Positions 4,085-40,535 of a stretch of DNA of 64,000 nucleotides are shown piece after piece. The number at the start of each line of letters is the position of its first letter. The stretch's first letter is position 1. A model generated the notes under the pieces. That model saw nothing but the letters and a program-made list of their open reading frames with translations. It was not told where the DNA came from and made no database searches. The stretch comes from Perkinsela sp. CCAP 1560/9. Lineage: Eukaryota; Protista; Euglenozoa: Kinetoplastea. Made by a program: the position numbers and the translations under genes. The stretch spans positions 1 through 64,000 of the forward strand of contig CBFFSA010000043.1 of assembly GCA_965644495.1 (NCBI GenBank), written 5' to 3'.

Positions 4085-6634
4085 GTGAATGCCCCCCGAG
4101 GACCCGCGCGCCACCCAGATGAACGAGGCGCTCCAGCCCATGTGGGCAACGGCCACGTGGGCCACAAGGGAGCGACTGTGGTTCCGCCTGCGCGAGTATT
4201 GCCAGGCGAAGGGAATCACCGCGAATCCTGCAAACGCGGTGCTCTTCCTGGAGACTCTGCCTCTCGCTACCTCGACGCGCATGGGGTACGCAGGGGCATT
4301 GAGGACTCTGTTCGAGCTCATGGGAATCGAAGGTACCCCATTGAGTCTCTACGTAAAGGCCCTGCAGGCGCAGGGGGGGCTAGAACCCACGCGGCAGATG
4401 CTACCAATCACGCCACTTCTTCTAAAGAAGCTGAGACGTCATCTCGACGTAAAGGAGAGCATGTGTTGCCTCCTGTGTTGGAAAGCCGCTGCGAGATGGA
4501 CCGAGACCGCCGACCTGAGGCGGGAGCAGTTCGTGAGTGTGGCCAGTCACGAGGTAATCATCTATTGGGGCAGGGGGACCAAGACAACCCGTCTGAATCC
4601 TTACCGGCCGTACCTCTACGCGATAGTGACTGGACCGGGGACACCCGAACTGGCTCAGTTTGTGGGAAGTTTGAGACCAGGCCAGCGCCTGTGTTACACG
4701 ACGGTCCGGGAGATGGACCACAGGATGAATCAACTTCTCGGTCCGGGGTATGGAACACATTCCATAAAAAGAGGTGCAATTACTTACCTATTCCACGAGA
4801 TCTCCCTCGGGAATCTCAGGATGGAGGACGTCCAGAACCTCACGAAGCACCTCAACGTCGAATCACTGTTGCGCTACAACGCAAGCAGTATTACAACGGC
4901 AAGGGCTCTCGGGACGCAGAGAGTCTCAGCACGTCTCCCAGTGCTGTAACCTCGGAGCACGTGGCAAAGTGCTTCGAGGAAGTGCCTTACCTTCGCAGGC
5001 ACTCCGTTGTTTGTGCACGCCGCTCTTCACGGCTAGCCAAGGCACACGACGCACACCTACCTTTGCACGTTAAGAAGTCGATACCTGTTATCCATTTGGA
5101 TCAGGTTAAGGAGTGGATGAGTATGTCAGCTGCCACTCGTTTTCGCAAGGTAGTGGATGAATTATTATGGGTACCTAAAGCCCCGTACCCCGAACCTAGT
5201 GTGAAAGGTTCATTGCCTGAGGCGGACGTCCGATTGTTGGAGGACGCAGGCATAATCTCTAAGGTCCCGGCGCAGGAGTTGAGAAAGCGCCCATCGATGC
5301 AGTTCATGATTCCCTTCACGGTTGTGGAGACCGATGATGAGGGCAATCAGCGCAGAAGATTTATTTCATGGACAAGGGACGATAACGATAGATTAAAATC
5401 ATATGAACCAAAGGTCCCATTATATCATCCCTCCAAGTATCTTCATAAGGCGCACGAGCCGATGGCTGTGAAGCGGGACTTCACATGCGGGTTTTACCAG
5501 ATTGGTATCCCGAAGAGGGCGCGGCCCAAATTCCGCCTTAGAACGACCAGTGGAGACGTGTATGAGATGAACGTCCTCCCGATGGGCCATAGGTGTGCAC
5601 CGGAGGTTATGCACACGGTTACCGCCGCGATTGCTGGCGAGGCGTCGATTTGTTCTCAGCGCTACTCGTTTCACCGAGGCGCTATCGACGTTTATGTTGA
5701 CGGAGTTCGGTTTGCAGGAACCGACTCCGAGGCCACCACGTACGCTCAGTTCATTGACGAGCGTTGCGACAAGGCGAACGGTCTTTTCAAAGATCGGGGT
5801 CAGCCCCCTGTAGCACAGTACGTGTTCAATGGGGTGGCGTTCGACCATAACGCGCATACGGTCTGCCTGGGGCCGCGAGTGATCAGGAAACTGCGAGCCG
5901 ACTCTTTCTTCAACATTTCCTTTGTTGACCTAGAGGCGGTGGTGGGGCGCCTCATTTATGGCTCCGCAGTTCTCCGACTCAATATGCCGCGGTTTTATTT
6001 CGCTTTGAAGGTGGCGCAACGGCGTATCAACTTGTTGAACCGTTGCCCGAAGTTATGTGACCGTCCGGTCGCACTCCCTGTTGTCACTCGCTCCATGCTA
6101 GCAGAGTGGAGAAACGAGTTGTTGGAGAATGTTCCACGGTCTCCACCTCCCCATCCCGATGTTGTTCCACACAAGCATCGTCTCTACACCGATGCCTCGG
6201 TGAAAGGGTGGGGAGCGATTATGTATTTAGACAGCGGAGAGGTTTTGATTACGGGAGAGGCGTGGCCTGAGTCCTCCTCGTATGAGGTGAATCGTGCGGA
6301 AGCTGCAGCAGTCCGCTTAGCCCTCGAGAAGTTTTCCGCGCATTGCCCCCGTGGAACCTGCTTGGATGTTTTTGTTGACAACACCTCCTGTCAGGCTGCA
6401 CTGAACAGGAGGATCTCCAAGTCAGAGGGGGTTTCAATGGAATTGCGCGAAGTCCTGCGACTGACAGAGGAGAAAGGTATTTGTGTCAAGGCAGCGTATA
6501 TATCCACGGATGAGAACCCGGCGGATGCTGTCAGTCGCGGGAAGGAGATTGAGATGGAGAAGGTCGAGAGATACGAAGGTAAGATGGAGAGAGACATTAA
6601 TAAGGTAGGCAGTCATATTCAGAGAAAGCCCTAA
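4085..6634 (+). CDS. Reverse transcriptase-RNase H of YR retrotransposon 2 (frame overlaps the YR ORF)
   Basis: RT: KRDFTCGFYQI, LPMG, YVDG. RNase H: YTDAS..GWG, NRAE, VDN, NPADAVSR. True start uncertain. Confidence 0.9.
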   Translation: MNAPRGPARHPDERGAPAHVGNGHVGHKGATVVPPARVLPGEGNHRESCKRGALPGDSASRYLDAHGVRRGIEDSVRAHGNRRYPIESLRKGPAGAGGARTHAADATNHATSSKEAETSSRRKGEHVLPPVLESRCEMDRDRRPEAGAVRECGQSRGNHLLGQGDQDNPSESLPAVPLRDSDWTGDTRTGSVCGKFETRPAPVLHDGPGDGPQDESTSRSGVWNTFHKKRCNYLPIPRDLPRESQDGGRPEPHEAPQRRITVALQRKQYYNGKGSRDAESLSTSPSAVTSEHVAKCFEEVPYLRRHSVVCARRSSRLAKAHDAHLPLHVKKSIPVIHLDQVKEWMSMSAATRFRKVVDELLWVPKAPYPEPSVKGSLPEADVRLLEDAGIISKVPAQELRKRPSMQFMIPFTVVETDDEGNQRRRFISWTRDDNDRLKSYEPKVPLYHPSKYLHKAHEPMAVKRDFTCGFYQIGIPKRARPKFRLRTTSGDVYEMNVLPMGHRCAPEVMHTVTAAIAGEASICSQRYSFHRGAIDVYVDGVRFAGTDSEATTYAQFIDERCDKANGLFKDRGQPPVAQYVFNGVAFDHNAHTVCLGPRVIRKLRADSFFNISFVDLEAVVGRLIYGSAVLRLNMPRFYFALKVAQRRINLLNRCPKLCDRPVALPVVTRSMLAEWRNELLENVPRSPPPHPDVVPHKHRLYTDASVKGWGAIMYLDSGEVLITGEAWPESSSYEVNRAEAAAVRLALEKFSAHCPRGTCLDVFVDNTSCQAALNRRISKSEGVSMELREVLRLTEEKGICVKAAYISTDENPADAVSRGKEIEMEKVERYEGKMERDINKVGSHIQRKP
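4089..4949 (+). CDS. Tyrosine recombinase (DIRS/VIPER/TATE type), possibly 5'-truncated
   Basis: AARW (R), GTKT (K), HSIKRG (HxxR), TKH (H), LLRY (Y). Confidence 0.9.
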   Translation: MPPEDPRATQMNEALQPMWATATWATRERLWFRLREYCQAKGITANPANAVLFLETLPLATSTRMGYAGALRTLFELMGIEGTPLSLYVKALQAQGGLEPTRQMLPITPLLLKKLRRHLDVKESMCCLLCWKAAARWTETADLRREQFVSVASHEVIIYWGRGTKTTRLNPYRPYLYAIVTGPGTPELAQFVGSLRPGQRLCYTTVREMDHRMNQLLGPGYGTHSIKRGAITYLFHEISLGNLRMEDVQNLTKHLNVESLLRYNASSITTARALGTQRVSARLPVL

Positions 6635-6752
6635 GGGACAGGATCACCAAATACAAAAAAAAAAACAAAGACAAGAAAAAAAGAAAAAAAACAAAGACAA
6701 GAAAAAAAGAAAAAAAAACAAAGACAAAAAAAAAAAAAAAAAACTTACTTTT

Positions 6753-7393
6753 CTTTAACGATAAAGATACAGTTTCTGTACCTTGTTGAATTATTTCCCC
6801 TTTTCTTCCATACACCATCTTCCAGACCATGGGAGGGCACCCCCCTCAAATACACTCCTTTTCGTCGGCATCCCCCCTCCCCGTCTCGTCCCATCACCCC
6901 CCTGCGCCGCATCCCCCCACCTCACCCTCCCTCCGCAGTGCGCTTGCCCCCCTGTTGTCTTTCTCTCTCGCGTCCCCCACCCCCGTGTCAGCAGCCAGAA
7001 GTATACAAATACTTGCTCACGGGGTGGGGGCAGAGTTCCTGGCAGATGGGCCCGTGCTTCGCCTCCTCTCGCCCCTGCGTCAGTCGCCCCGTGTCTCTCT
7101 TCGCGCTCTTCTCCCTCGGCGTGACGACGTCTTTGTGTTTCGTGGCCTCCACGTCTCCCACCCTCGTACGGCAACTCAAAGTATCTTATACTGCTAACGG
7201 GGTGGGAGCGGAGGTGCAGGACCATACGGGCCTGGGTGCATGCGGATCGGTGAGTGGGGTAGGGAGTGAGGGAAGGGAAGTACGAGAGGGCTAAGAAGAG
7301 TAGGTGTGGAAAGTATGGGGAGTAAGGGAAAGTGAAGGGCCGTAAGTGTGGAAATTGTGGAAAAGTTAAAAATAAAAATAAAAAAAAAAAAAA
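6753..7393 (+). mobile_element. SL-headed non-coding retroposon (SINE-like), copy 1
   Basis: SL at 6753-6788, a C-rich then G-rich ~600-nt body and an A-tail. Near-identical copies at 20825 and 28423. Confidence 0.85.
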
Positions 7394-7394
7394 T

Positions 7395-10300
7395 CTTTAA
7401 CGATAAAGATACAGTTTCTGTACCTTGTTGATTTATTTTCTTAATCTTTCTCACGTTCCATGGTTCTAACTCGCTCTAAAGCAAAACAGGAATCCAACTT
7501 TGATCGCGAAGCGGGCGCGCACAAGCTCGGTTCATGGGACCAGTTTCAGGCAAACAAAGACCTGGTTAAAGGCGCTAGCACATACAAGGAAGAGCTGTAC
7601 ACGACACCACTTCCGCCGGATCCTTCATCAGAATTAGAACAACGGGCCGAAGACATTGCCCTCAGCATTACGAACTCCATCGAAGGCGTGACACCAGACA
7701 CAGGGCGTCAGCAAACGAGCTCGGAAGAAGAATTATTTTCCAGCGTCCGTCCCACCGAGAATTCCGTTTTCCAGTTCGAAGGGGCCGCTCCTTCTTCACT
7801 CAGCCAATCGAAATCTACAAACAAGGCTGTGAAGGAGAAATGCGAGCGCCACAACCGGGGGATCGCTCGTACCGAATACAATTATGACGACGACAAATTA
7901 ATTTTCCCCGACCTGACGCCTCAAGACCTCGACTTTTCGTTGAGCGGTGGAACCAAAGTAAGGAAAAAGAAAAAGCGCCCTAAAGGGATCTCACTTTCCC
8001 AGCTACATACCCAGTTATGCACCGAGTCTGGGGGCGACAGTGATGACCGTGACTCCACAGATGCGTCAACAAGTGTTCACAGCTCTCCGGCTGAATCACC
8101 CCTGAAGAAGTTAACCCCGAAAACGGCTGTAGGCAAACGTAAACGTCCCCAGCAGGTGTCGAAAACTACCTCCCCTGACGCCCCCAAAGCTGAAACAATG
8201 AACAATGCCCCCGAACCGACCCCAACCCAAAACTGTGCGATAGAAAAAACACACACCACGCATGAAAATACGCGAAAATGTCCCTTCGAGGGATGTGCTT
8301 GGAAAACAGGGCCCCACGGGGGCCAATGGCAGGCATTCCACAACCACGTAGCAAACAGACACGGTGATGAGGTCCCAGACGAGTGGTGGAAAGACGAAGG
8401 ACGTTTTAGGTGTCATGATTGCAATAAACATTATGATCAAGGCAAACGGGAAACCCACGACAAGATCTGCATGTTCCGCCATTCCTCTCCTCAAAGCCGT
8501 CCGTCGCCCTAGACGAGCAGTGCCGATCCTGTTCTAAGCCCCAATGTGGACTCGAATGCTCTGCCTTCCCTTAACTCTCCTTCCACACCCTCTCATCAAA
8601 GCGTAGTAAGCGAAAACGTGAAAGTCTCCGACACACCCCTTCCGAGTTTATCCTCTATCAGTGCGCTACTTATTAACACTTGCAAGGACATCCCCAACAG
8701 TTGCCGACAAGAATGGGCTAAAGCACTCTGCTGTTGCTTATCCACAGCAGCGAGAGAGAACACGCTCGAGGCATGGACACTCCTCGCCATGCTGCCCAAA
8801 TGCGTCCTACCCGCCCCTCATCGCGGAGGTAACCGCGCAAAAGCCTCTTACGCCTCCCATGTAAAGAAGTGCCTCGCGAGATGGTCCAACAAAGATTTCC
8901 TGGCGCTTTGGAAAGAAGCTGTCTCGAGTGTATCACGCAAAAAGAAAAATGTACCACAAGCGCTTACCATAGACGAAGAAGTAAAGAAAGCGGCTTTACG
9001 GGCAGAACGGCTTGTCCGCGACGCGGAGCTCTCCCGCGCCATGACAGCATTAACTTCGGAACCACTTGCCCCTGACGACGACGCCACCTACTCGAAGCTC
9101 CAGGCAAAGCATCCTCAGAGACTTGACAGCACTTTCAACGTGGCAAGCCCTTCAGCGCCGGAAGCAAAACCGCTTGAAGCAACGGAAGACGAAGTAGCCG
9201 AGGCCCTAGCGACTTTCCACCGAGGGTCCTCGGGAGGGGCCTTCGGTATGCGGCCGGAGCACGTTCAGGCCGCGATGCAGTACCATCACGACGCGTACAC
9301 CGATCCTCTGGGCACGCTTACGAAGTTTACCAATCACTTGCTCGCAGGAAAAGCACCGTTGGAGGTCAAACATTATTTTGCGGGTGGTCGGTTATGCGCC
9401 CTGAAAAAGGGTGAACACGATGTTCGTCCAATTGCTGCCGGAGAAACCCTTCGCCGCTTGGCAAGCAAAGTTGCCTGCCTCTCCGCAAAATTCAAGGCCC
9501 GAAAACTCTTCAGAGAGCACCAGTACGGCGTAGCCACACCTGCTGGAGCCGAGCGCATCATCCACCTCTGTCGGAAGACCTTCGCCGAACATATTGAGGA
9601 TGACGACTTCCTGCTATGCAAAGTCGACCTCAAAAACGCTTTCAATAACGTCTCACGGGATTTCTTTGTGGCCCTAACACGCCAGCATTTCCCTGAGCTG
9701 GGTGCGTACGTGGAGTGGTGTTACAACACTCAAAGCATTCTGACCTTTGGCTCACGCTTTATCGAATCATCTGAAGGGGTGCAACAAGGCGACCCCCTGG
9801 GCCCTCTGCTCTTTTCGCTTGTGATGAAAGAAGTTTCCCTACAAATCCACACTGCCGCTCCGAAACTCGCTTTAAACCTGTGGTACTTAGACGACGGGAT
9901 ACTCGCCGGTCCATCCTGCGACGTTCGGCACGCACTGGACGTGATCGCGATGTCCGGCCCGAAATGGGGATTGCATATCAACGTGGCCAAGTGCGAGATC
10001 GCAACACACCCAGCTTCCTCCCATCGTTGCTCACTTTTCCCTGACATCCCCGGTCTGAACACGAATTCGGCAGGAAATTTTCACATTTTGGGGAGTCCAA
10101 TTGGTTCGACAGAATTTTGCCGCGAATTCTTTCTCAAGAACACAATCGACATGGCAGAGGAATCTCTCGAGGCCATAGCTACACTTGAAGATCCCCAGGT
10201 GGCCCTTTCCCTCATACGCCACTGTACTGGTTTCTGTAAAATGGTTTACTCGCTCAGGACTACCCCGACAACGGAACTTCAAGATATCTGCCAACGCTTA

Positions 10301-11765
10301 GATGATGCCGTCCAGCGCACTATTGAACACTTCTTCCGTCCTTTGAGTGATAGGGCGCGACGCCAGGCGCAACGCGAAAAGCGGTACGGGGGGTTGGGCC
10401 TTCGGTCGGCGGGGGAACATTCGAGTGCGGCTTACGTTGCCTCCGTAGCTTTCTCAACGGACAAAGACCGTTGGTACCCAGCGGACGCTGAGGGCTTTGA
10501 CCATGCCGTGCGGGAGGTGAACAGGCGTGCCGGAAAGACGGTGGTCCAACAAGGCGGCAAAATTCCGAAAAGTATGGCTTTGGCGACTGATTCTCCGTAT
10601 ACCGACGCGCAGGAATCCGGAACAGAACTGGTGATTCCCCGACAACGCGACCTTAGCCACGCCATCGCCAACCAGGAATTTAACGAGGCATTTGTGAAAG
10701 CTGACCTTCGCACACGGGCCAGGTGGATATCAGAAACAGGAGAAGGAGCCTCAGCATGGGCTTTCGTGATCCCCTCCAAGAAAACCGGTCTGGCTTTCAC
10801 ACCGACGGAGTTTCGCACCCTCACACGCTGGTGGCTAGGGGACCCAATCTATCCAGCGTCCCGGCCTTGTCCTATGGAAAAATGCACGCTACCGCTAGAT
10901 CCCGAGGGTGACCACGCTCTGGGGTGCAAAAGCGGGCATGGTATAATCGGACGCCACAACGCACTAGCGGCACAGTTTACTTCTGAATGTAAAAAGGCCG
11001 GTTTCACCCCGCGGAGAGAAGTGAGTCTGGGCAACAAGGGTCCTGGGGGCGCCCTCACCAGGCCCGGAGACGTGTTCATCCCTACAATCGGGCTAGGCCA
11101 GTCTCTTGTATTAGACTTCGCCGTCACTCATGTTCAGCAACCAAAGTATACGGACTTAGTCCGTGATGCTAACTGGGTGACGGCGGGGTCTTTTGCGGAA
11201 CGATACGCCACCGAAAACAAAAAGAAGCAAAGAGAGGAAGCAGAGTTTGCACGCCATCGATTTGGAGCGATGGTCGTGGAATCTTATGGAGCGTGGAGTC
11301 CAAGCGCCTTTGCGATCCTCAAGGAGGTTTCCGTCTCTCGTGCGGCATACTCCGGGGGTACCCTTTCGAACGGGGAAGCCTTACACCAATTGGTGACCTC
11401 ACTTAACATCACTCTGATGCGGACACAGGATCGGATGCTGGTACTCCGACTTCCCGCGGCGGTCCCTGACACGGCCCTCCTTGGATATGGGAACGATGAG
11501 TAATTCGGTCCCCCCAATCATTTAACAGCCGCAGGGGGGTGGAGGGTGTTTCTCTGCGAAAGGGGGGGGGGCAAGGGGGGGTACCAAGTCACTAACCGAC
11601 GTGCCGTCACGGGTCTTAGTTTTGGTGCGGGAGTGATTTGATTAGGGGTGGATTTCGGGTAGAATTGTTTGCTAGTTTTTAGTAAAAAAAAAAAAAGTTA
11701 AATTTTCAAATTGCTAATTTGATTGCTTGTTTTCAACTCGTAAAAATAAAAAAATAAAAAAAAAA
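7395..11765 (+). mobile_element. Full-length SL-headed CRE family-2 retrotransposon
   Basis: SL at 7395-7430, single long reading frame, A-tail. Confidence 0.92.
7460..11503 (+). pseudogene. CRE family-2 polyprotein (LsmAD-like, 2 zinc fingers, RT, CCHC-RLE) with one in-frame TAG at 8510-8512
   Basis: ORFs 7460-8512 and 8546-11503 share a frame. Motifs: GVQQGDPLGP, WYLDDG, RHNAL..E..RPGD..LDFAVTH. Confidence 0.92.
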
Positions 11766-11766
11766 C

Positions 11767-14700
11767 CTTTAACGATAAAGATACAGTTTCTGTACCTTGT
11801 TGATTTCTTTTCCCTTTATATCATCCTTACGCCCTATGGTGACAACCCGGTCCAAAGCTAAGCAGGGTACCGACTTCCAGCACGAAGTTAGCGCGCACAA
11901 ACTTGGCTCTTGGGATCAATTTGAAGCCAATAAAGATCTAGTCGAAGGGGTGAGTACATTCGAGGAGAGTCTTTATACCACGCCACTTCCACCTGATCCC
12001 TCATCTGAATTATTGGAGCGCGCTGACAAGATTGCCTGCGACATTAAGAACTCTACAGAAGGCGAAACGCCAGACACAGGACACCAGAATGCTACCACCG
12101 AAGAAGAACTGTTCTCCAGTGTCCGCCCGACGGAAAGCCTCGAGTTCCAATTCGAAGGAGCCAATTCCTCTTCACTCAGCCAATTAAAGTCCTCTAGCAA
12201 GGCTGTGAAGGAGAAGTACGAGCGCCATAACCGCAGGGTAGGCTGTGCCGAATATGACTATGCTGATAACAGGCTAGTTTTTCCTGATCTCACGCCTCCT
12301 GATCTTCGCTTCTCAGTAAAGGGTAGCAGTAAAGGCCGTAAAAAGAAGAAACGCCCGAAGGGCATCAATCTTTCTCAGCTGGATGCAGTGTCCGGGGCCG
12401 ACAGCGAGGAACGCGACAATATAGAGTCCAGCGCGAATTCACCCGGGCCACGCACTCATGCCACCGGAGTCATGGACAGCCCGTCTATCAAATTGTCCCA
12501 AAAGGAACAGAACACTAACACCCCCACGGGTAAGCGTAAACGTCACGTGCAGGTGTCGAAACCAGGGCCACGCGATTCCTCAGATACCGAAAGGCTCAAT
12601 CAACCCCCCAATACCACTCCAGAAAAGCCACCTACAGTCAATGGAAACACGCGGAAATGTCCTTCTCAGGGATGTGCATGGCAAACTGTGCCTCACGGGG
12701 GCCAATGGCAATCCTTTTATAACCACGCATCCCACAGACACGGGGACGAGGTGCCTGATACCTGGTGGAACGAGGAGGGACGTTTCCGATGCAGGGATTG
12801 CAACAGGCACTACAACCTAAGCAAACAGGTCACCCATGCCGAAAACTGCGCTTTCCGCTGCTCTTCTCCCCCACCTATCTCCGAACCTACACAGACAGGG
12901 GGCGACCCGAGGGACAACCCTGCATTTTTTGCCGCACAAGCCGTCGCCGAACCCCTTCCCTCCCTGGCGTCAATCTGTTCGACACCTCTCAACACATGCA
13001 AAGACATTCCCAACAGCTGTCGCCAGGGGTGGGCGAAAGTCTTCTGTGAGTGTCTCTCTTCCGCTGTACGAGACAATACAGTTGAGGCCTGGACTCTTCT
13101 CGCCATGCTACCGAAATGCGTACTACCGGCACCTCATCGTGGGGGGAGCAGGGCAAAACTATCGTACGCCTCGCACGTTCGGAAGTGTCTCGCCCGGTGG
13201 TCACGGAAAGAATTTCTCCCCCTTTGGAACGAAACAATTGCGAGCCTACAACACAAAAAACGCGTCGCACAAGCACAGAGTCCGGAGGACGAGATAACCA
13301 AATCTGCTATGCGAGCTGAAAGACTCGTTCGCGACTCGGAACTATCTCGAGCTATGGCTGCCCTAACCTCTGAACCAGTAGCCCCGTATGACGATGATAC
13401 TTACACTAAACTCCAAGCTAAGCATCCATCCCGACTCGCTACGTCGGTGAAACCCCTCAGTTCTTCGACGGAAATGGGACCAAAACCACTTCGAGCCACA
13501 GAGGAAGACGTAACGCAGGCTCTTGCAACTTTTCACCGGGGGTCATCGGGTGGCGCTTTTGGGCTACGCCCTGAACACGTACAAGTGGCACTAGAGTACC
13601 ACCATGACGGCCGTACGGATCCATTGGGTACACTGACCGACTTTACGAACCACATGCTCGCGGGGCAAGTGCCGCTCGAAGTTCAGTGCTATTTCGCTGG
13701 AGGCCGCTTATGCGCGTTAAAGAAAGGGGAGCGCGACGTGCGGCCAATAGCGGCCGGAGAGACGCTCCGTCGCCTGGTGAGCAAAGTCGCCTGTCTCTCC
13801 GCCAAAACAACAGCTCGTAAGCTCTTCAAAGGACACCAATACGGTGTGGCCACTCCAGCAGGGTCTGAGCGCGTCATCCATCGATGCAGACAGACATTCG
13901 ATTCTCACGTTGATGACAATGACTTCATTCTATGCAAAATTGACCTGAAAAACGCATTTAACCATGTCTCACGGGACTGGATCATTGCCCTTACTCGCGA
14001 ACACTTTCCCGCTCTCAGTCACTACGTAGATTGGTGTTACTCTTCGGACAGCCTACTTACTTTCGGAACACGCACCATTCCGTCTTCTGAAGGAGTGCAA
14101 CAAGGCGACCCCTTAGGTCCTCTCCTTTTTTCCCTGGTTCTGAGAGAAGTAGCGGCGGAAATTCACGCAGTAGCCCCAATGCTCGATTTGAATCTGTGGT
14201 ATCTGGACGACGGGGTGCTGGCTGGATCATCTGCTGATGTGCGGCACGCATTCGACGTGCTGGAAATCAAAGGACCACAACGGGGACTCCATATCAACGC
14301 CGCTAAATGTGAACTCGCCTTACACCCCTCATCATCTCCTCGCGCCTCCGTTTTCCCTGACATCCCTGGCCCGAATAAAAATTTAGAGGGTAATTTCAAC
14401 ATTTTAGGTAGCCCAGTCGGATCCACTGAATACTGTCATAAATTCCATTTGGACAATGCCTTCGAACTGGCCCAAGATTCCCTAACCGCTATAACTTTGC
14501 TCGAGGATCCCCAGATCGCTCTCTCCCTCATCCGGCATTGTACAGGCTTCTGCAAGATGGTCTACTCTCTCCGTACCACCCCGACATCTGCACTGCAAGA
14601 TATTTGTCGACGCCTGGACGACACTGTTCAGTCCACTCTCGAAAACTTTTTCCACCCACTTGGCGATGACGCCCGGCGACAGACACAACGAGACAAGCGC

Positions 14701-16141
14701 TTCGGAGGGCTAGGGCTCCGTTCAGCAGAGGAACATTCCTCTTCTGCTTACGTGGCCTCCGTGGCATTCGCATCAAGGAAGGATGGCTGGGCCCCCACCG
14801 AAGCGAAAGGTTTCGAAGAAGCAGTGAGCGATGTCAACAATCGCGCTGGACTAAATCTGGTAGACGGCGAAAATGGCACAATACCCAAGAGCATGGTTGT
14901 GTCAGATCGTTCCCTCTTTAGTACTATCGAAGCGAGCGAATCTAGAAATGAAGCGGTAGTTCCCAGACAACGGGATCTCAGTCACTCGATCTCTTCCCAG
15001 GAATACAACAACGCGCTTAATACCGCTGACCCGCGGACGAGGGCCCGATGGATCTCTGAAACGGGGGAAGGAGCGTCGGAGTGGGCATTTGTTTTGCCTT
15101 CCAAGAAGAACGGTCACGCATATACCCCGACAGAGTTCCGGATGCTGGTACGCTGGTGGCTTGGGGAGAACATATACCCCGGCACCCGACCTTGCCCCAT
15201 GGACAAATGCACGCAGCCGCTTGGTCCAGAGGGGGATCACGCGATGTCGTGCAAAAGCGGGCATGGTATCATTTCCCGACACAATGCTCTGGCAACACAG
15301 TTTGCGGCGGAGTGTTCCAAGGCCGGGCTCGCCCCCAAACGAGAGGTCAGCCTGGGAAACAAGGGTCCGGGGGGCACCCTCACTAGGCCTGCAGATGTCT
15401 TTATAGACAGCCACCTCGGTCGGTCCCTTGTACTCGACTTCGCTGTCACCCATGTCCAGCAACAAAAGTATACGGACACAGTCCGTGACGCTAACTGGGT
15501 GACGGCGGGGTCGTTCGCGGAACAATATGCCACCGTGAACAAGAGCATGCAACGCGCAGAGGCGACTGCAGCACACTTTAAGTTCGGAGCTATGGTCGTA
15601 GAATCCTACGGCTCGTGGTGTCCCAGCGCAATGTCTGTTCTCCGAGAGGTCGCAGTAGCTAGGGCGGCTAAATCGGGCAGTGACATATCGAAGGGGGCGG
15701 CCTTACATCAGATTCTCACAGCTCTGAATGTAACACTGATGAGGTCGCAGGCCCGAATGCTAGTCTTGCGATTACCCGCAACGGGCCCCGACCTGGCTCT
15801 CCTGGGGTACGGGAAGGAAGAGTAGCAAGCGGCCAAGAGGTGGAAAACCTCGTGGGCAAGGGTGGGGCGGTAAGTGTCGTGGTTGCTTTGCTTGGTTCCT
15901 GGTTCTGCAGGGGGGTTGTGGCCAGCGTCGGACGGTCCTGCGGGCAATAAGGTCCGGGGTAGTGAGAGAGGTGGCAGGTTGAGGTTTGCTCGTTTCGGGT
16001 TTGCTTGGGCATAGATTGCTTGTTTTTATTGTTATTGTTTTTATTGTTCTTATACTTACGGGAGATCGAATTGCTAGTTTTGGGCTCCAAAATATGAAAT
16101 TGCTAATTTGATTGCTTGTTAAAAAAAAAAAAAAAAAAAAA
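11767..16141 (+). mobile_element. Full-length, apparently intact SL-headed CRE family-2 retrotransposon
   Basis: SL at 11767-11802, uninterrupted ORF, poly(A) at 16121-16141. Confidence 0.93.
11836..15825 (+). CDS. CRE family-2 polyprotein, 1329 aa: LsmAD-like domain, C2H2 and C2HC fingers, RT, RLE
   Basis: First ATG after the SL (MVTTRSKAK). Motifs: CPSQGC..HASHRH, CRDC..H...C, YLDD, CPMDKC..HAMSC..RHN..RPAD. Confidence 0.95.
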   Translation: MVTTRSKAKQGTDFQHEVSAHKLGSWDQFEANKDLVEGVSTFEESLYTTPLPPDPSSELLERADKIACDIKNSTEGETPDTGHQNATTEEELFSSVRPTESLEFQFEGANSSSLSQLKSSSKAVKEKYERHNRRVGCAEYDYADNRLVFPDLTPPDLRFSVKGSSKGRKKKKRPKGINLSQLDAVSGADSEERDNIESSANSPGPRTHATGVMDSPSIKLSQKEQNTNTPTGKRKRHVQVSKPGPRDSSDTERLNQPPNTTPEKPPTVNGNTRKCPSQGCAWQTVPHGGQWQSFYNHASHRHGDEVPDTWWNEEGRFRCRDCNRHYNLSKQVTHAENCAFRCSSPPPISEPTQTGGDPRDNPAFFAAQAVAEPLPSLASICSTPLNTCKDIPNSCRQGWAKVFCECLSSAVRDNTVEAWTLLAMLPKCVLPAPHRGGSRAKLSYASHVRKCLARWSRKEFLPLWNETIASLQHKKRVAQAQSPEDEITKSAMRAERLVRDSELSRAMAALTSEPVAPYDDDTYTKLQAKHPSRLATSVKPLSSSTEMGPKPLRATEEDVTQALATFHRGSSGGAFGLRPEHVQVALEYHHDGRTDPLGTLTDFTNHMLAGQVPLEVQCYFAGGRLCALKKGERDVRPIAAGETLRRLVSKVACLSAKTTARKLFKGHQYGVATPAGSERVIHRCRQTFDSHVDDNDFILCKIDLKNAFNHVSRDWIIALTREHFPALSHYVDWCYSSDSLLTFGTRTIPSSEGVQQGDPLGPLLFSLVLREVAAEIHAVAPMLDLNLWYLDDGVLAGSSADVRHAFDVLEIKGPQRGLHINAAKCELALHPSSSPRASVFPDIPGPNKNLEGNFNILGSPVGSTEYCHKFHLDNAFELAQDSLTAITLLEDPQIALSLIRHCTGFCKMVYSLRTTPTSALQDICRRLDDTVQSTLENFFHPLGDDARRQTQRDKRFGGLGLRSAEEHSSSAYVASVAFASRKDGWAPTEAKGFEEAVSDVNNRAGLNLVDGENGTIPKSMVVSDRSLFSTIEASESRNEAVVPRQRDLSHSISSQEYNNALNTADPRTRARWISETGEGASEWAFVLPSKKNGHAYTPTEFRMLVRWWLGENIYPGTRPCPMDKCTQPLGPEGDHAMSCKSGHGIISRHNALATQFAAECSKAGLAPKREVSLGNKGPGGTLTRPADVFIDSHLGRSLVLDFAVTHVQQQKYTDTVRDANWVTAGSFAEQYATVNKSMQRAEATAAHFKFGAMVVESYGSWCPSAMSVLREVAVARAAKSGSDISKGAALHQILTALNVTLMRSQARMLVLRLPATGPDLALLGYGKEE

Positions 16142-16167
16142 GCGGACGGGATCCTGGGGTTTGGAGG

Positions 16168-16198
<31 letters not shown>

Positions 16199-16202
<4 letters not shown>

Positions 16203-17553
16203 CCGGTGGGTTTCGGGCCCGGTGGGTTTCACAATCGGGAAGAGGAGCAGGAAACTGGGCCTTCGTAGTACCCTCAAAGAGCAGAGGTTACGCTTTTACT
16301 AAAACTGAGTTCAGGACTCTTTCGCGTTGGTGGCTTGGAATGGACGTCTTCCCGGAAGATCGAACATGCCCAGCAGAAGGCTGCACCCTCCCATTGCTAA
16401 AGAATGGAGAGCACGCCATACTATGTAAAAACGGACACGGTTTGATATCCCGCCACAACGCCCTGGCACATCAGTTCACTTCTTTCTGCAGCAAGGCCTT
16501 TCTTCAACCACAGAGAGAAAAGAGTCTGGGAAACCGAGGCCCAGGTGGCGCTCTCACTAGACCCGCGGACGTTTTTCTTCCTACTGGCTCTCTGGAAAAG
16601 GGAGTTCTGGCGCAAGGAATGGTATTAGATTTTGCAGTCACACATGCACAGCAAATGAAGTATTTGGACCTAGTCCGTACTGCTAGCTGGGTGACACCAG
16701 GATCTTTTGCCGGACAGTACGCCGAGACGAAGGCGAGGCAGCGACAAGAAGCGGAAGATGCGGGACACCTTTTCGAAGCTATGGTCGTCGAATCCTTTGG
16801 CTCTTGGAGCGAAAGCGCGCTCTCGGTTCTCCGTAATATCGGAGCACAACGGGCTAATGCGTCAAAAGAGCTTCTCTCATGGAGCCAAGCGCGAAATGAC
16901 CTCCTAACGGAGCTCAACATTTCCCTGATGCGTTCCCAAGCCAGAATGATGGTTTCACGCATCTGCGTGCCGGATCCCACGGAACCTATGGTAGTGACAT
17001 AGGTCGTGGGCACACAAACTGCCGGTCCGGATGCCGGTCGATGCCGACAGGGTCTACGCTCACGCCTAGTCCGCCAGGTCTAGGTACTCCAAGTGAGGTA
17101 GGACAAGGGCTGGGAACTTTGTTCCCTCCCCGTCGGCCAGCATCATGCTCCGCGACCGTGCCGCTGTCGGCACAGGCCCATTGCTTGCGCCCTCTCGTAC
17201 AACAAGAGAAGGGTTAACAAGGCAAGCTGGGAGAGGTCGAAAGACCCGGTCCGGAACGCGCGAATGGTTAGGGGAAAGTCTGCCCCTCCTAGCAGAGGGA
17301 GACCTTACCCTCCCTGGAAAGCTGGAAAGATTCGTAAGGGGAAGTGGGTAAGATGGGAAAGCATGCATTTACTAGTTTTATATTTTGCTCGTTTTCAAAA
17401 TGGGGGGAAGTTAGGGAAAGAAGTTGAGCAAGCAGGAAAGTAAGTGAGAAAGTCATAAAAAAAAGTATATTATAAGAGTTTACGAAAAGAATTTTAATAT
17501 TTTTATCGTCGGTGTTCATACTTCTAATCGTTCAAAAAAAAAAAAAAAAAAAA
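16199..17553 (+). mobile_element. 5'-truncated CRE family-2 copy (RLE domain ending at 17002, structured 3' UTR, A-tail)
   Basis: RARWVSQ...RHNAL...RPAD...LDFAVTH, immediately after a poly(A). Confidence 0.9.
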
Positions 17554-20824: not shown

Positions 20825-21315
20825 CTTTAACGATAAAGATACAGTTTCTGTACCTTGTTGTACCTTGTTGTTTTCTTCCATACACCATCTTCCAGACCAT
20901 GGGAGGGCACCCCCCTCAAATACACTCCTTTTTGTCGGCATCCCCCTTCCCCGTCTCGTCCCATCACCCCCCTGCGCCGCATCCCCCCACCTCACCCTCC
21001 CTCCGCAGTGCGCTTGCCCCCCTGTTGTGTTTCTCTCTCGCGTCCCCCACCCCCGTGTCAGCAGCCAAAAGTATACAATACTTGCTCACGGGGTGGGGGC
21101 AGAGTTCCTGGCAGATGGGCCCGTGCTTCGCCTCCTCTCGCCCCTGCGTCAGTCGCCCCGTGTCTCTCTCCGCGCTCTTCTCCCTCGGCGTGACGACGTC
21201 TTTGTGTTTCGTGGCCTCCACGTCTCCCACCCTCGTACGGCAACCAAAAGTATTTATTACTGCTAACGGGGTGGGAGCGGAGGTGCAGGACCATACGGGC
21301 CTGGGTGCATACGGG
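20825..21315 (+). mobile_element. SL-headed SINE-like copy 2, 3'-truncated and fused to the next CRE
   Basis: SL at 20825-20860 plus a repeated TACCTTGTTG; body matches 6800-7240. Confidence 0.85.
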
Positions 21316-21351
21316 CCTTGTTGCTTTATTTTCTATTACTTTCTCACTTTC

Positions 21352-24300
21352 ATGGGCATGTTCACGCGGAGCCGGGCGAAAGAAACGGGAGTAGCACCCG
21401 TCGTACAGCCTCTACCTCCGACCCGTCGCAGGAAGAAAACAATTGAGGAGAAACCGCCTGAGGCTCCGTCCGAACCGAGCGCTTCTCCTTCGCCGCCCCC
21501 GCCGCCCCCGCCGCCCTCACCACCCACGACTTTGTCCACTGAAACTCCGTCTCTTCCATCGCCCGTCCCCGCCGCATCGCGGTCACCTACTTCACCGCCA
21601 CTTCCGCCGCCACTACCGCCGCCATCACCACCATCAACGCCATCTGAGTGTCCACAATCTCCTCCTCCGTCGATGCGTCGATCGCCGACCCCACTGCCGA
21701 AAAGTGACTGCAAAGTCACAATTAAGAACGCACTGCTGTCTTCAAATTTCTTCAATCGGCGAAACAAACAACTCAACCTTCTTCAGACAAGAGCTGACAA
21801 AGTGTCGCAAGACGAGAGCCCAACCATTCGTCACCCAGAAAGATGCATCAAAATAAGAACGAACACCGCTCGGAACACAGCATTTACGAACTGGAGCAAG
21901 GAACCAACGTACGCTCAGGCGGCCACCCCTCCACCAAAAGATCCCACTACTCTGGATGAACTCGTTTTACGACCGTTAAATCCGTCGGCCGTTGCCATGG
22001 ACAGTTACCGTAAGAAGGCTAAAGCTCTGCAGGATGCTATCATCCAAAAGGAAAACGAGCACAACAAGAGTACAAAGAACGTCCAGGAAAACGGACGCGT
22101 ACAAAACAACGAACCGATTCAGTACGGCGAAATTGCGCCCAACGGCGACGAAGGTTTCCGACCTGACACATCGAGCGAAATACAGGTAATTAGCACGACT
22201 CCGGGCCCCAAAACCAAGGAGTATGGAAGTAACACCGAGTTCTACGACTGCATCACGCCAGACACACAAGAAAAGGACAAACCAACCGAAACAACAAATC
22301 AAGTCATCAGCATACTTTATAGCGAAGGAAATCCGGAACAAGACAACCACATCGGTGGCATCATAAAATCGATAAATCCAGACACCGAATTCCCCATTCC
22401 TTTCGAGCGCATACAGAAGTCTTGTTCTTCAATAAAAAAAGGAACCAAATGCACAGTGGCGTGGACATTCGATAAACAAACCGCCTTGAACATCTCCGAA
22501 GGAACCGTAACACGATCCGCGAATCGGACCGGGGCGTCGAAACTACATTTGAGCTATAAAGGTCTGTTCGGCCATCGTGCAGAAGAAAGTTTTCCAGGTT
22601 TTCTTCCTCCGCAAGAAAATATCCGTGTATATCAGATCCGTTGGTACAGAGCTCCTCCAGCCATTGACGAGAACCTTCCTATTGAGACCCGCGAAGAAAC
22701 ACATGTTAAAAAGGCCAGAGCGCTTAAGCTGGACACAGGAGCTGAAGACGTAGACCATCTCCCAATTCCAACCGCGAAAACCATTAGTCCTGATTTTATC
22801 TCCAGTGTGATTGCCATATACAGGGACATCATGCACATCTATGCAGAAAGCGACTACGTACAAAGAAATCAAATTTGGAATAAAGTTTTGTCTGTGATAG
22901 TTTACGAGAGGAAATTTAGACGAGAAGAAATACGAATTTGAAAAGACTCCTTTTTCTCGAATGGCCCTACGAGGCACATAATCTCTGATTATGAATTCTA
23001 TTATATCTTTTAATATGATTTAAATTATAACTTTATGTAGATTGTGTATAGTTTTATAGCTTACATTCTCTTACAAGTTATTTTTTTTTTGGGGTGGTGG
23101 CTGCGTGCCAGGGGGCAAAGCCCCTTCACTACGTATTATAATTTTATATTATGCTTTTGAAATAGTTTGCGCGCTATATACATCCGGATAGTTGCATCAA
23201 TAATACGAATATTCTTTAGCTAGTAAATATAGGCAGTGGATGAGATTCAGGATATCAGCGATATATTTCTTTAGCTCTTACAACAATGTTTTCTTACAAG
23301 TTGTTTTTAATGTATGTGGAAGACTCTCGTCGTTGATTTCCAATGAAACTTTCATTAGCTTCCGTGCGTCAAGCCAATAGTAGACAACGGCGGCGAAGAC
23401 CCATACAACAAGAGACAGTTGAACACAATCAACCAGAAGACGAGTTTTTTCATGAGGACAAGCGAGCAATCAAACGGGCCACTCGTTTGGTGCTAGAAAA
23501 CTGTACATCGAAGGCTTCAAGGATTTTCGACTGTTCTTTTCAGAAGAGCACGTTGACTGATCAAGAAAAAGTCCAAAAACTACGTGCACTTCATCCAGAA
23601 CAAAACTGCAATTTCAAAGTTCCGGAAGATGCACCGATTATCGCAGGAATAGCCGTACAAGAATTAAGATGTGCAAGTAGACGACTGGCAAAAGGTGTGA
23701 GCCCTGGGCCTACAGGTACGACCGACAGCATCGTTAGACTTCTCATAGACGACGAGCCATGTTGCAATAGTCTTTGTCACATGATGAGCGATCTGATCAA
23801 CGGATTCCTATCTAGACAAGTTCTACAGCGTCTAAATCGGGCAAGACTCGTAGCCATCGACAAGCCCAACGGGGGAGTACGCCCAGTAGCTATTGGAGAA
23901 ATATTTAGCAAATTAGCTGGAATAATTCTGCTGCAAAGATACGAAAAGTCACTAGAACCCCTCTTTGCACCAATGCAACAAGGCGTATTCTCTCAAGCGG
24001 GGTGCGAACGAATCGTACACAAGTTGCGGGACCGCTGGCTTGACGGACACTCAATCCTGACTGTGGATATGCAAAATGCATTCAACTCACCCTCACGAGA
24101 GGAAATTGCAAAGTGCGTTTTTGCTTTCGCTACACTGAAACCCTTTCAAAGGTTCTTTGCGGCCGAATATTCAAATGCTTCCGAACTTTTATTTTATGGC
24201 TCCGATGGCAGCCTGACGGACATTATAATGATCTCAGCAGGTGTACGGCAAGGGTCCGCTCTGGCTAGTCTTTACTTTTGCGTATTCTGTCAACCAATAC

Positions 24301-25865
24301 TCGAGACACTGGCCTCCGAATTTCCAGGTATTGAAATAAATGCATACATTGACGATATAACGTTAGTCTCTCGAGATTCAACCGAACTGGAGAAAGCATT
24401 CTTTAGGCTCAAAGGTCTCCTAGAAGAAAAACAGGTGAAACTAGCCGAGGCAAAATGCGTTTGGTTCAGAGGAAAATCCGGAAATTCCATACCGAATTCG
24501 CTGAGCACCCAAGGTGTAAAGTCGGAGGACGAAGCGGTCAAAGTACTCGGAGCGTATATTGGAGAAAACAACACAATAAGTGAACGACTTTTGCGTCAAC
24601 TAGAGAAGCAGGTCACAGCTTTTCGGCGGCTAAAACGAATGGGCATCAATAATATATCGATGATTCTTTTAGCAAAATGTGCCAATGTTCGTCAACAATA
24701 CCTGATTCGTGTTCACCCGCCCGAAACAACAGAGAAAGCATCATCACAATTCGATCAAGAGGTTGAAAATGTGGTAGAGACTTGGATTGGTCCACTCTCT
24801 CCTGATCAAATGAAAATTGTACGATTACCCGTTAAGAAGGGAGGAATGGGTTTGGCAGCGAGCAGTCCCCTTAGGGAGACGGCATATGTGGCATCCCGCT
24901 ACTCGGTTCTTGAGCGCCGAAACTCTTTTTCAGCTCGGATCGACAACGCGGTGCCATCACACCCGTCTATTCCTAAGAACTCGACAATGAAAGTCATACC
25001 AGTGGACGAAAAAGCTTCCACCAGCATTCATCATGTCGAAGTATTGAAAAAGTTGCAAACGGATCCCGACATTAAGCCCATTCTACAAGCCACATCCTTC
25101 AAAGGAAACAGCGACTGGATCCTTTCCAACGCGAAGTACATCCCTTCCCATCTCTTCAAACTCGCGATTATGCCACGACTAAATGCCCAACACCCAGATC
25201 TACCTACCAGTCTATTGTGTCCAGGGTGCGGTATTCTCCTCAATAACCGAAACGCCCTCACCCATATCCCAGGCTGTGCTCAATGTTCAGGTATAAATAC
25301 GACCGTGAAACATAACTCACTTGTCGGATTTTTACATCGTCTATGCGTGAAAGCAGGCATCCCATGTGAAACGGAACCTAGAAACTTTTCTACGTGGAAG
25401 TGCATCGCTTGCCGATCCACAATCAGTCCGGAAAACCAGTTGGTACATCAGAAGACTTGTGCAGGAAAAAAACTTTGTCGGTCTGGCCCCGATCTCGTGA
25501 TCTATTGGAACACGGGTGCGGTCTTCTATGATCTGACAGTTATTCACGAACTCTCAATGTCTAATCGTGGAAAGAAATGCACACAGCTCATGAATGACGC
25601 GCTGCAGCGAAAGTCCAACACATATGTACGTACGAACTTAATTCGTGAAGACTCATTTCAATGTTTACCCGTACTGGCAGGAGGCGCTTTGCACCGCAAT
25701 ACGCAGAACTTGGTACACTCGCTAGCAGACGCGGCCATGCTAAACAGGAAACAGGTCGAACTCGAAATGAAGCTGACGATTCAGGAGCTTAATGGATTAG
25801 GGATTTATGCGCAGCTAAAGAAATACTTAGACGGCTGCACGCAAACTCAAGAATATAGTATATAA
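21352..25865 (+). CDS. CRE family-1 polyprotein (join 21352-22894 + 23341-25865, 1355 aa), interrupted by a solo YR repeat
   Basis: SL remnant CCTTGTTG at 21316-21323. The join gives KVLSAMKLSLA (paralog RLLSAIKLSLA). Motifs: GVRQGS, YIDD, CPGC..HIPGC..KHN..E..GPDL..YDLTV. Poly(A) at about 26028-26049. Confidence 0.9.
22895..23340 (+). repeat. Solo terminal repeat of a YR retroelement (variant C)
   Basis: TGATAGTTTACGAGAGGAAATTTA...TTGATTTC; no TSD; removal restores the frame exactly. Confidence 0.8.
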
Positions 25866-28422: not shown

Positions 28423-29105
28423 CTTTAACGATAAAGATACAGTTTCTGTACCTTGTTGAATTATTTCCCCTTTTCTTCCATACACCATCTTCCAGACCAT
28501 GGGAGGGCACCCCCCTCAAATACACTCCTTTTTGTCGGCATCCCCCTTCCCCGTCTCGTCCCATCACCCCCTGCGCCGCATCCCCCCACCTCACCCTCCC
28601 TCCGCAGTGCGCTTGCCCCCCTGTTGTGTTTCTCTCTCGCGTCCCCCACCCCCGTGTCAGCAGCCAAAAGTATACAATACTTGCTCACGGGGTGGGGGCA
28701 GAGTTCCTGGCAGATGGGCCCGTGCTTCGCCTCCTCTCGCCCCTGCGTCAGTCGCCCCGTGTCTCTCTCCGCGCTCTTCTCCCTCGGCGTGACGACGTCT
28801 TTGTGTTTCGTGGCCTCCACGTCTCCCACCCTCGTACGGCAACCAAAAGTATTTATTACTGCTAACGGGGTGGGAGCGGAGGTGCAGGACCATACGGGCC
28901 TGGGTGCATGCGGATCGGTGAGTGGGGTAGGGAGTGAGGGAAGAGAAGTACGAGAGGGCTAAGAGGAGTAGGTGTGGAAAGTATGGGGAGTAAGGGAAAG
29001 TGAAGGGCCGTAAGTGTGGAAATTGTGGAAAAGTTGGACTCCATACATAAAAAGTTAGACCCAATACTATTCCCCCCAATTATTTGCAAAAAAAAAAAAA
29101 AAAAA
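28423..29105 (+). mobile_element. SL-headed SINE-like copy 3 (longest 3' end)
   Basis: SL at 28423-28458 and an A-tail. Its terminal ~55 nt also occur just upstream at 28340-28420. Confidence 0.85.
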
Positions 29106-39465: not shown

Positions 39466-40535
39466 GGCTCCACGGGCACTTCCGTGAGTTTTTGAGACAC
39501 TTCGATGATTTCTCACCGAAGTGCCTACGTGTCACAGGGTGACTCATCGAAACGTCAATCTTCTCATCGGAGGTGATTTTAATTGCTTTGGAAAGAAAAA
39601 AATCGAGAACATGAAAATAAGAAAGCGGCGACACTGAGAATCTGTGTCTGCCACTTCCGCAGGTTTGTGTATTTGTTTTCCTATACTACGACACCTAGTT
39701 TACGTGTCTGGAGGCAAGGCCCAACTTTGAGCGAAGCCCACTTCTGGAGGCAAAAGCCCCCTTTTGCGAGCAAGGCCCAACTGTGAGCGTAGCCCTGGGA
39801 CAGAATTATATTTTTTGGCGACCCGCGCGCTCCATGCGGTGGTGGTGGATATTAGCACGGCGGGCGGATGAGTTGGCATCACGGCCTTCTTTTTCCATCG
39901 GGCACGAGGGAGCGGCAAAATCTCAGGAGCTACTCCTGATTCTTTTGCTTTGGAGCGTGTGAACACTCCCATGAAAGGTAAAAAAAGTAAATAATCAACA
40001 AGGTACAGAAACTGTATCTTTATCGTTAAAGATTATTGTACGTGTGCTTCTCTCTAGATTCGTGGGAAGCAATTTGCGAAGCCCAACTACCTTGATAACA
40101 AATTTTAGTACCCATTTTGGCCGCGCGGGGGCCCCCGCGTGAGCGGGGGTGCGCGCGGCCGCGAAACGGCGAGGGCCCGCGTGAGCGGGCCTGAGCCGTA
40201 CCCCGCGTAGGATTCCCCTGTTCGTCGTTAGTGGGAAGCAATTTGCGAAGCTCACTGAATTTCGTAGTTTTCGCTACGCAGGCGTTGTCAACGTATATAG
40301 TGAAGTGTAGGATACTGAACGCACGGAAAATGAAAATCGCGCTGGCGCGCGGGTCGCGCACTGAGAACCTATGTCTGCCACTTCCGCAGGATTGTGTATT
40401 TGTTTTTTAGTCGAAAATGCAGCTACCACCTCAAAAGTAATTAAAAACACCTTCGATGAGTTTCTTTCGTTTCGATGATTTTCGTTTTGACACGTGGGCG
40501 TTTCGATGAGTACTCACGGAAGTGTCCTCGTACCC
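39466..40535. mobile_element. MITE with 8-bp TSD, same core but a different TIR
   Basis: TSD AATAATAT; TIR core CACTTCCGTGAGT; SL at 39996-40031 (minus). Confidence 0.85.

Follow-up and report, generated by a model that had tools for sequence, protein, structure and literature searches.

An LsmAD domain at the N-terminus of a family of spliced-leader-bearing, RLE-type retrotransposons from Perkinsela

Retrotransposons of the CRE group (CRE1/2, SLACS, CZAR) and the other elements with a restriction-like endonuclease (RLE), such as NeSL, R2, R4, HERO and Utopia, encode one long open reading frame (ORF) with N-terminal zinc fingers, a central reverse transcriptase (RT), and a C-terminal CCHC motif followed by a PD-D-K nuclease motif. 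A curated trypanosomatid mobilome published in 2025 gives zinc fingers, RT and RLE as the only domains of CRE elements (PMC12278014), the extra domains known in RLE elements are a Ulp1 protease and an RNase H (PMC4640811), and the 'SLACS reverse transcriptase' models of the Diplonema genome are annotated without domain analysis (PMC10161547). The DNA analyzed here, 64,000 nucleotides (nt) of contig CBFFSA010000043.1 from the euglenozoan Perkinsela sp. CCAP 1560/9 (the window), includes five copies of a retrotransposon family that shares this organization. It also shares with the known elements a poly(A) tail, 5′-truncated copies, a euglenozoan host and a tight association with spliced-leader sequence. 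What sets it apart is an N-terminal LsmAD, a domain of the Ataxin-2/PBP1 proteins that is unreported for any RLE clade. The copies and their LsmAD domains are listed below with the matches to the Pfam LsmAD model PF06741 or to a hidden Markov model (HMM) of the family; aa, amino acids; UTR, untranslated region.

7392-11763, plus strand: copy 1, with leader 7392-7430, ORF 7460-11503, broken by a single TAG (8510-8512), and an A-rich tail
7511-7759, plus strand: LsmAD of copy 1 (PF06741, 31.2-33.6 bits, HMM envelope), around the segment 7529-7750 pointed out in an earlier, sequence-only reading of the window
11764-16198, plus strand: copy 2, the intact reference, with spliced leader, 5′UTR, single ORF, 3′UTR and poly(A) at 16172-16198 (27 nt)
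11887-12135, plus strand: LsmAD of copy 2, aa 18-100 (PF06741, HMM envelope, hhalign)
47584-52460, plus strand: copy 3, with leader and ORF pieces 47617-49329 and 49848-52079, broken between zinc fingers and RT; the 3′ end is approximate
47713-47961, plus strand: LsmAD of copy 3 (PF06741, 22.2 bits, E 2e-4; family HMM, 130 bits)
54130-58553, minus strand: copy 4, with leader 58515-58553 and ORF 58520-54609, which has a TAG in frame (57468-57470); the 3′ end is approximate
58134-58364, minus strand: LsmAD of copy 4 (PF06741, 19.5 bits)
59485-63912, minus strand: copy 5, related to copy 4 by segmental duplication and sharing its flank and its TAG, here at 62827-62829
63493-63723, minus strand: LsmAD of copy 5 (PF06741, 23.6 bits; family HMM, 144 bits)

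The sequence-only reading had proposed that the protein of these RLE retrotransposons opens with an LsmAD-like domain, and that the block, which recurs in four further copies, is conserved in four diverged subfamilies. Both proposals were borne out. Translation of 7529-7750 (plus strand), near the start of ORF 7460-8512, gives exactly the peptide quoted in that reading, and a six-frame motif search placed the Trp of the WDQF motif of the four other N-terminal blocks at 11911, 47737, 58340 (minus strand) and 63699 (minus strand). The block is about 80 residues long, opens the protein in all five copies of the window and occurs in at least eight subfamilies. The matches of copy 1 and of copy 2 (33.2-34.1 bits) exceed the PF06741 gathering score of 25 bits, with E values of 3e-7 to 4e-8, and span model positions 5-71/72; those of copies 3-5 are sub-threshold (19.5-23.6 bits, E 1e-3 to 7e-5). 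When a retroelement-only profile was compared by hhalign to a cellular-only LsmAD profile, the probability was 99.6% and the E value 1.1e-24 over 82 columns. Among 40 jointly aligned domains, retroelement and cellular, 36 match PF06741 and no other family. The retroelement-only alignment A1 (9 sequences, 8 subfamilies) was also used as a profile against 1.84 billion representatives and retrieved 1083 proteins, most of which match at residues ~140-260 of 500-900 aa. This is the position expected from the Ataxin-2 layout, and P0035, which was checked in full, has the order SM-ATX, LsmAD and PAM2. The Pfam matches of copies 1 and 2 and the profile-profile alignment confirm, at the level of sequence homology, that the block is a true LsmAD homolog.

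The features shared with Ataxin-2/PBP1 are WDQF-xx-N, STY-x-E-x-LYTT, a central helix, an acidic patch and EE-xx-[FYH]-S-x-V. In the 40-domain alignment the invariant or near-invariant residues are W26, D27, Q28, F29, N32, S40, T41, Y42, Y47, T48, T49, G82, E89, E90 and V96, and 21 positions are invariant among the nine retroelement sequences from eight subfamilies. Marks specific to the retroelements are H21 and G24 (H-xx-G ahead of WDQF), P52 (YTTP-I-P) and an invariant TPDTG where the cellular domains have an ERG-type segment. Unlike Ataxin-2/PBP1, the element lacks SM-ATX, PAM2 and the long disordered C-terminal half, and its LsmAD is fused to a reverse transcriptase. Pfam searches revealed no SM-ATX or LSM domain in the element at E values up to 1, only 17-20 residues preceding the LsmAD, and no match to the PAM2 model PF07145; copy 2 has no PAM2-like pattern. 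A sequence search of the PDB, with a single sequence and then with a profile, found no solved structure with a detectable LsmAD. The AlphaFold2 (AF2) model made from the 40-sequence alignment has a pLDDT of 69 and a pTM of 0.34, with one well-predicted long helix (residues 57-72) between short turns, and looks like a fold-on-binding segment built on that single helix. [quoted passage not shown]

The LsmAD block is under purifying selection and is kept as strongly as the catalytic domains, a conclusion supported by the nonsynonymous divergence (dN) between subfamilies. The values are 0.17-0.19 for the LsmAD block, 0.18 for RT, 0.20 for RLE and 0.33-0.45 for the linker; synonymous divergence (dS) is saturated (>1 or undefined). 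All were obtained by pairwise Nei-Gojobori comparison only, with stop-interrupted copies read through as X. In the most distant copies the block is 52-58% identical vs 25-29% for the linker, and intact ORFs of 1291-1330 aa are present in several subfamilies. The contrast between a conserved block and a diverging linker ahead of the zinc fingers, already pointed out in the sequence-only reading, therefore holds.

To place the origin of the domain we compared it with cellular LsmADs, including that of a PBP1-like gene of the presumed host. The ENA assembly ERZ24900291, made from long reads, encodes a protein, P0037, that has an SM-ATX followed by an LsmAD and whose neighbors are COG4, pyrophosphatase, PRP38, TruD and PIF1 genes; a PAM2-like match (17 bits, E 0.0045) is found in the ORF that follows. 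The pieces of the PBP1-like gene (L004 8001-8642, 8690-9151 and 9151-10152) were searched separately and not as a joined model. Judged from these domains, P0037 is the canonical PBP1/Ataxin-2 gene of the host. An MMETSP transcript matches the pyrophosphatase gene of this assembly at 100% identity, and the next named matches (48-55%) are labelled PhM_4/PhF_6, which we take to be prokinetoplastid strains. In single-domain scores, P0037 is the best canonical SM-ATX-bearing match to the retroelement profile, with 74 bits vs at most 56 for other Ataxin-2-type proteins, and among 130 cellular domains it has the highest mean identity to the retroelement domains (41.9%; the median is 32.7% and the mean within the family 47.6%). 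A higher score, 82 bits, goes to P0034, a JGI metagenome protein whose architecture is unknown and which falls together with P0037. In trees of LsmADs the retroelement sequences form one clade (FastTree SH-like support 0.81, IQ-TREE ultrafast bootstrap [UFBoot] 61), which groups with P0037, P0042 and P0034 apart from the other eukaryotic LsmADs (SH-like 0.96, UFBoot 82). The FastTree analysis included all 158 domains and the IQ-TREE analysis 57, after 13 retroelement domains had been left out as redundant and 88 cellular ones at random. Because the closest cellular LsmAD is that of the host PBP1-like protein and the nearest RT relatives lack the domain, the most likely history, as far as the sequences tell, is a single capture from a PBP1-type gene of the host in this euglenozoan lineage, before the subfamilies split. 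The tree thus supports the capture from the host that had been proposed from the window alone.

Two of the proteins in this group deserve mention. P0042 (L005:6001-7083, ERZ24900291 contig ctg3974l) and P0034 have a C-terminal LsmAD that groups with the host PBP1 and retroelement domains, and their N-terminal parts matched no family; they may be host paralogs, gene-call fusions or capture intermediates. An LsmAD outside the Ataxin-2 context and without Lsm is also found in euglenozoan proteins with PDZ domains, P0029 (D. papillatum DIPPA_14428), P0031, P0033, P0036 and P0041 (L003:8001-10940), which have a PDZ and two LsmADs, with an RRM in two members, and are so far restricted to diplonemids. 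Unlike the element, these are cellular, multi-domain proteins, and their LsmADs are a separate clade. They were considered as donors and rejected: their high total scores summed two or three domains, each domain reaches ~50 bits as in ordinary Ataxin-2s, and they are not the nearest clade. Since they carry LsmAD without Lsm, they indicate that LsmAD can act as an independent module.

The close protein relatives of the element all come from ERZ24900291; one of them, P0004, has an N-terminus identical to that of copy 1 and a spliced leader directly upstream. LsmAD is present only in a lineage with at least 50% RT identity, all of it from this one assembly, and was not found in RT relatives at 41-43% identity nor in the sponge elements that are the nearest named RT relatives (31-35% identity). 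None of the best 120 RT matches is named CRE, SLACS or CZAR. The sequence-only reading had assigned the domain to CRE retrotransposons as a class, and this attribution is too broad for a domain confined to one lineage. The family has the traits listed for CRE elements: its one ORF encodes N-terminal zinc fingers, of which CRE proteins have one or two, and it ends in poly(A) (PMC12278014). A full-text literature search found no paper linking LsmAD or Ataxin-2 domains with retrotransposons, and a 2026 survey of Ataxin-2 'chimerisms' mentions neither reverse transcriptase nor transposons. This agrees with the earlier statement that an LsmAD in a retroelement is undescribed. The element type itself is known; as a host-derived, selected accessory domain of RLE retrotransposons without long terminal repeats (non-LTR), LsmAD appears to be of a new kind, no prior description having been found.

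The protein, of ~1330 aa, has the order LsmAD, variable linker, two zinc fingers, RT, CCHC and RLE. In copy 2 it is encoded by one uninterrupted ORF, 11836-15825 (1329 aa), and the remaining features of this copy and of its 3′ neighbor are as follows.

12658-12849, plus strand: N-terminal zinc fingers of copy 2, CCHH (aa 275-302) and CCHC (aa 319-338), by motif scan; present in all subfamilies
13720-14322, plus strand: RT domain of copy 2 (Pfam RVT_1, 63 bits), with YLDD at 14200-14211
15193-15470, plus strand: C-terminal CCHC (aa 1120-1139) and RLE motifs RPADV (aa 1184-1188) and LDFAV (aa 1200-1204) of copy 2, with the K further downstream, by motif scan
16213-17457, plus strand: 5′-truncated 3′ fragment of the copy-4/5 subfamily, directly after the poly(A) of copy 2 (blastn, 72-73% to 55386-54203 and 60745-59485)

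The RT domain, poly(A) 3′ end and 5′-truncated copy identify the five elements as one family of non-LTR retrotransposons, and the C-terminal CCHC and PD-(D/E)-x-K-type motifs assign it, by motif only, to those with an RLE; no Pfam model covers the RLE region of copy 2. RVT_1 scores are 56-66 bits in the window copies, the closest match of the RT among solved structures is R2 of Bombyx (silkworm; 8gh6, E 1.7e-6), and the copy proteins have no Pfam match to an apurinic endonuclease (APE, Exo_endo_phos) domain. Copies 1, 2 and 3 are 65-72% identical at the DNA level, and the near-identical copies 4 and 5 represent a fourth subfamily. As their flanks are identical, copies 4 and 5 are the result of a duplication that followed insertion. 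The appearance of an ORF1 and an ORF2 in copies 1, 4 and 5 is, from the comparison of their codons, an artifact of nonsense mutations, and the predicted native protein is a single polyprotein. The TAG of copy 1 stands where the near-identical P0004 has a Ser, and the TAG shared by copies 4 and 5 replaces a Trp conserved in all others. Programmed stop-codon readthrough between 'ORF1' (350 aa) and 'ORF2' was rejected for the same reason: the stops differ in position, and sister copies keep the Ser and Trp codons.

An identical 31-nt leader precedes every full-length copy (e.g. 11772-11802). There are 11 copies of it in the window, where none is expected by chance:

1366-1396, 6758-6788, 7400-7430, 11772-11802, 20830-20860, 28428-28458 and 47592-47622, plus strand: leader copies
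38034-38064, 39996-40026, 58515-58545 and 63874-63904, minus strand: leader copies

Each of the 11 comes after an A-run and abuts the 5′ end of a retroelement, and these elements belong to several unrelated families. The three or four 5′-most positions differ among copies, which would fit read-through of a hypermodified cap. On a JGI metagenome contig, L006, the same leader adjoins a 5S rRNA gene (98 bits) and is directly followed by GTATGAGAAGCT. We take GTATGAGAAGCT to be the conserved intron start of kinetoplastid spliced-leader (SL) RNA genes. Linkage to 5S rRNA is usual for SL RNA genes (PMC10161547), and L006 confirms that the leader forms the exon of an SL RNA gene, with the 5S rRNA gene beside it. 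Its core, CAGTTTCTGTAC, is common to all 14 euglenozoan leaders tabulated in PMC3795323; its AACGAT part is nearest to the diplonemid-type entry of that table. A trypanosomatid or Diplonema papillatum as the host was discarded, as the leader differs from each of the 14 published sequences (PMC3795323). Judged by its kinetoplastid-type leader and the MMETSP match of ERZ24900291, the host is a marine euglenozoan in culture.

Unlike CRE elements, the copies in the window are not inserted in SL RNA genes at position 11/12 but start with a complete leader joined to their own 5′UTR. No leader followed by a GT intron is found within the window, and no copy in it lies in an SL RNA gene. Since the leader is joined to the 5′UTR of the element itself and the other end is poly(A), the genomic copies were reverse-transcribed from mature, trans-spliced and polyadenylated mRNA. 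The 11 leader copies indicate that such mRNAs are the templates of the retroelements in this region, which accumulate head-to-tail, poly(A) followed by leader. A partial leader, roughly its first 17-20 nt, precedes the full leader in copy 3 (47559-47600) and in copies 4 and 5 (58546-58575 and 63905-63934, minus strand). [quoted passage not shown] Downstream of the copies with a partial leader, the corresponding 3′ half was not found.

As for the function of the domain, LsmAD would come out of the ribosome ahead of the rest of the polyprotein, and it could dock onto the host messenger ribonucleoprotein (mRNP) factor that normally reads the LsmAD of PBP1. The best-documented candidate partner of the Lsm/LsmAD region is the DDX6/DHH1 helicase. 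Docking would keep the nascent RT on the leader-capped, polyadenylated message from which it is translated (cis-preference), and/or would route the mRNA of the element into a stabilized, protected mRNP until target-primed reverse transcription starts at the poly(A). We favor this explanation, in which a host-captured LsmAD docks the nascent RT on a host mRNP, and give it as a whole about an even chance, the mechanism being the part that we infer. Work cited in PMC12898128, as far as that citation goes, links the Lsm/LsmAD region to DDX6, in a fly model RNA-binding proteins dock on the Lsm or LsmAD domains (PMC7946432), and Ty3 needs Dhh1/DDX6 and other P-body factors (PMC4589538). The best functional analogy is the PIE of LINE-1 ORF2p, an N-terminal motif that binds PABPC1 and has been proposed to set cis-preference co-translationally: like the LsmAD it is an N-terminal, non-catalytic part of an RT protein, and it links the nascent protein to the poly(A)-mRNP (PMC7617806). 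The analogy is functional only, because PIE is a short linker motif without homology to LsmAD that contacts RRM1 of PABPC1 directly.

Several points weigh against this explanation. The isolated human LsmAD folds poorly and does not bind RNA (PMC11898529), no partner of isolated LsmAD is established, and in the fly the Lsm and LsmAD pair alone failed to target mRNA (PMC7946432). The AF2 model is weak and supports no specific interface, the dN/dS estimate comes from pairwise comparisons with saturated dS, and the trees are built on ~87 columns with moderate support, i.e. the UFBoot values of 61 and 82. That P0037 and the window derive from one organism is concluded from a shared assembly and concordant taxonomy and not from one contig.

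Relatives of the element provide a second connection to the same host proteins. P0191 and P0194, two JGI metagenome proteins that are 41% identical to the RT-RLE of copy 2, have a C-terminal MLLE (PABP) domain after the RLE, at residues 1557-1620 and 1079-1143 respectively (47-49 bits vs a cut-off of 27). The ligands of MLLE are PAM2 motifs, among them the one in PBP1. As two RT relatives carry it, elements of this group seem to have drawn on the PABP-PBP1 node on two or more occasions, the MLLE being an independent, second acquisition of a poly(A)-mRNP module. In P0197, a further relative, the N-terminus gives a Prim-Pol-like match. More tentatively, and on balance we would not expect it, RLE elements of marine protists may have repeatedly captured PABP-PBP1 modules to hard-wire the RT to the poly(A)-mRNP that forms on the trans-spliced mRNA of the element itself, with LsmAD marking a discrete binding partner that is also its missing function in Ataxin-2.

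Other roles of the domain can be envisaged. The LsmAD of the element could be a decoy that competes with PBP1 for the LsmAD partner and disables PBP1-dependent control, e.g. granule sequestration or repression, without tethering RT to mRNA. The element does have an LsmAD without the output parts of PBP1 (Lsm and PAM2), as a typical dominant-negative fragment would, and the residues conserved in cellular LsmADs are still present in it. A stoichiometric, cis-encoded fusion to a low-abundance RT would however be poorly suited to titrate a host factor that is abundant, there is no sign of PBP1 restricting retroelements in this lineage, and deletion of pbp1 has no effect on Ty3 (PMC4589538), so we regard a decoy as unlikely. 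The domain could instead be an intramolecular helper that aids nucleic-acid binding by the zinc fingers or RT of its own protein, or it could bind a host Lsm-fold protein in trans. In Ataxin-2 the adjacent Lsm domain is helped by LsmAD to fold and to bind RNA, and the fold-on-binding appearance of the AF2 model would suit such a role. But there is no Lsm fold in the element, and a fast-evolving linker of ~170 residues separates the LsmAD from the zinc fingers; a helper is, in our estimation, a rather poor prospect.

A further proposal, made in the sequence-only reading, was that the LsmAD recruits or mimics the kinetoplastid MKT1-LSM12-PABP mRNA-stabilizing complex. Such a complex is likely to exist in a euglenozoan host, T. 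brucei reporters are expressed more strongly when PBP1, LSM12, MKT1 or PABP is tethered to them, and the MLLE of the related elements points to the same network. The contacts that have been mapped, though, sit on parts of PBP1 that the element does not have: the Lsm domain is the site for LSM12 and PAM2 that for PABP (PMC11166328), and yeast Mkt1 binds Pbp1 residues 491-549 (PMC12345631), a region without a counterpart in the element. The contact by which XAC1 enters the trypanosome complex has yet to be placed, so another, unmapped partner might still provide a link; recruitment of this complex is all the same not the likeliest reading, and we consider it improbable. The idea that the domain is a non-functional passenger, a chance likeness or an annotation artifact, such as an insertion behind a PBP1 exon, could appeal to the three of five copies in the window that fall under the Pfam gathering score. 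It is excluded by the hhalign E value, by a dN as low as that of RT, and by the same position of the domain in at least eight subfamilies on many contigs, each time with the spliced leader directly upstream. Docking of the nascent RT on a host mRNP remains our preferred explanation.

The accessory domain points at the poly(A)/PBP1 mRNP, the node through which LINE-1 ORF2p, on the current view, achieves cis-preference. We know of no partner or function assigned to LsmAD, the signature domain of the human disease protein Ataxin-2. An LsmAD that has been excised and fused to an enzyme with its hallmark residues kept offers a minimal, selectable version for a partner search. Gene control in euglenozoans is largely post-transcriptional and every mRNA is trans-spliced; if true, elements copied from spliced-leader mRNAs and equipped with a putative mRNP-docking module show mobile DNA adapting to this regime.

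The rest of the window has no evident host gene, and a search with Rfam over the window gave no match. A second leader-bearing family has a conserved 5′ region after the leader and is found at 6750-7391, 20830-22941 and from 28428 onward. Its unit at 6750-7391, of ~640 bp with an A-rich tail, is a short or internally deleted retrocopy, and 20899-22941 is an ORF of 680 aa with no Pfam match that is followed by an RVT_1 ORF at 23343-25865. Positions 751-1305 are a perfect (ACT)185 microsatellite located just upstream of a 5′-truncated leader (1366) and an RT-bearing ORF (1480-2907). An ORF of 849 aa at 4085-6634, with RT-like motifs and a weak RT_RNaseH match, is followed by an A-rich 26-nt tandem repeat at 6655-6744. 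This element is of a different retroelement class, LTR- or DIRS-like, and lies in the same array.

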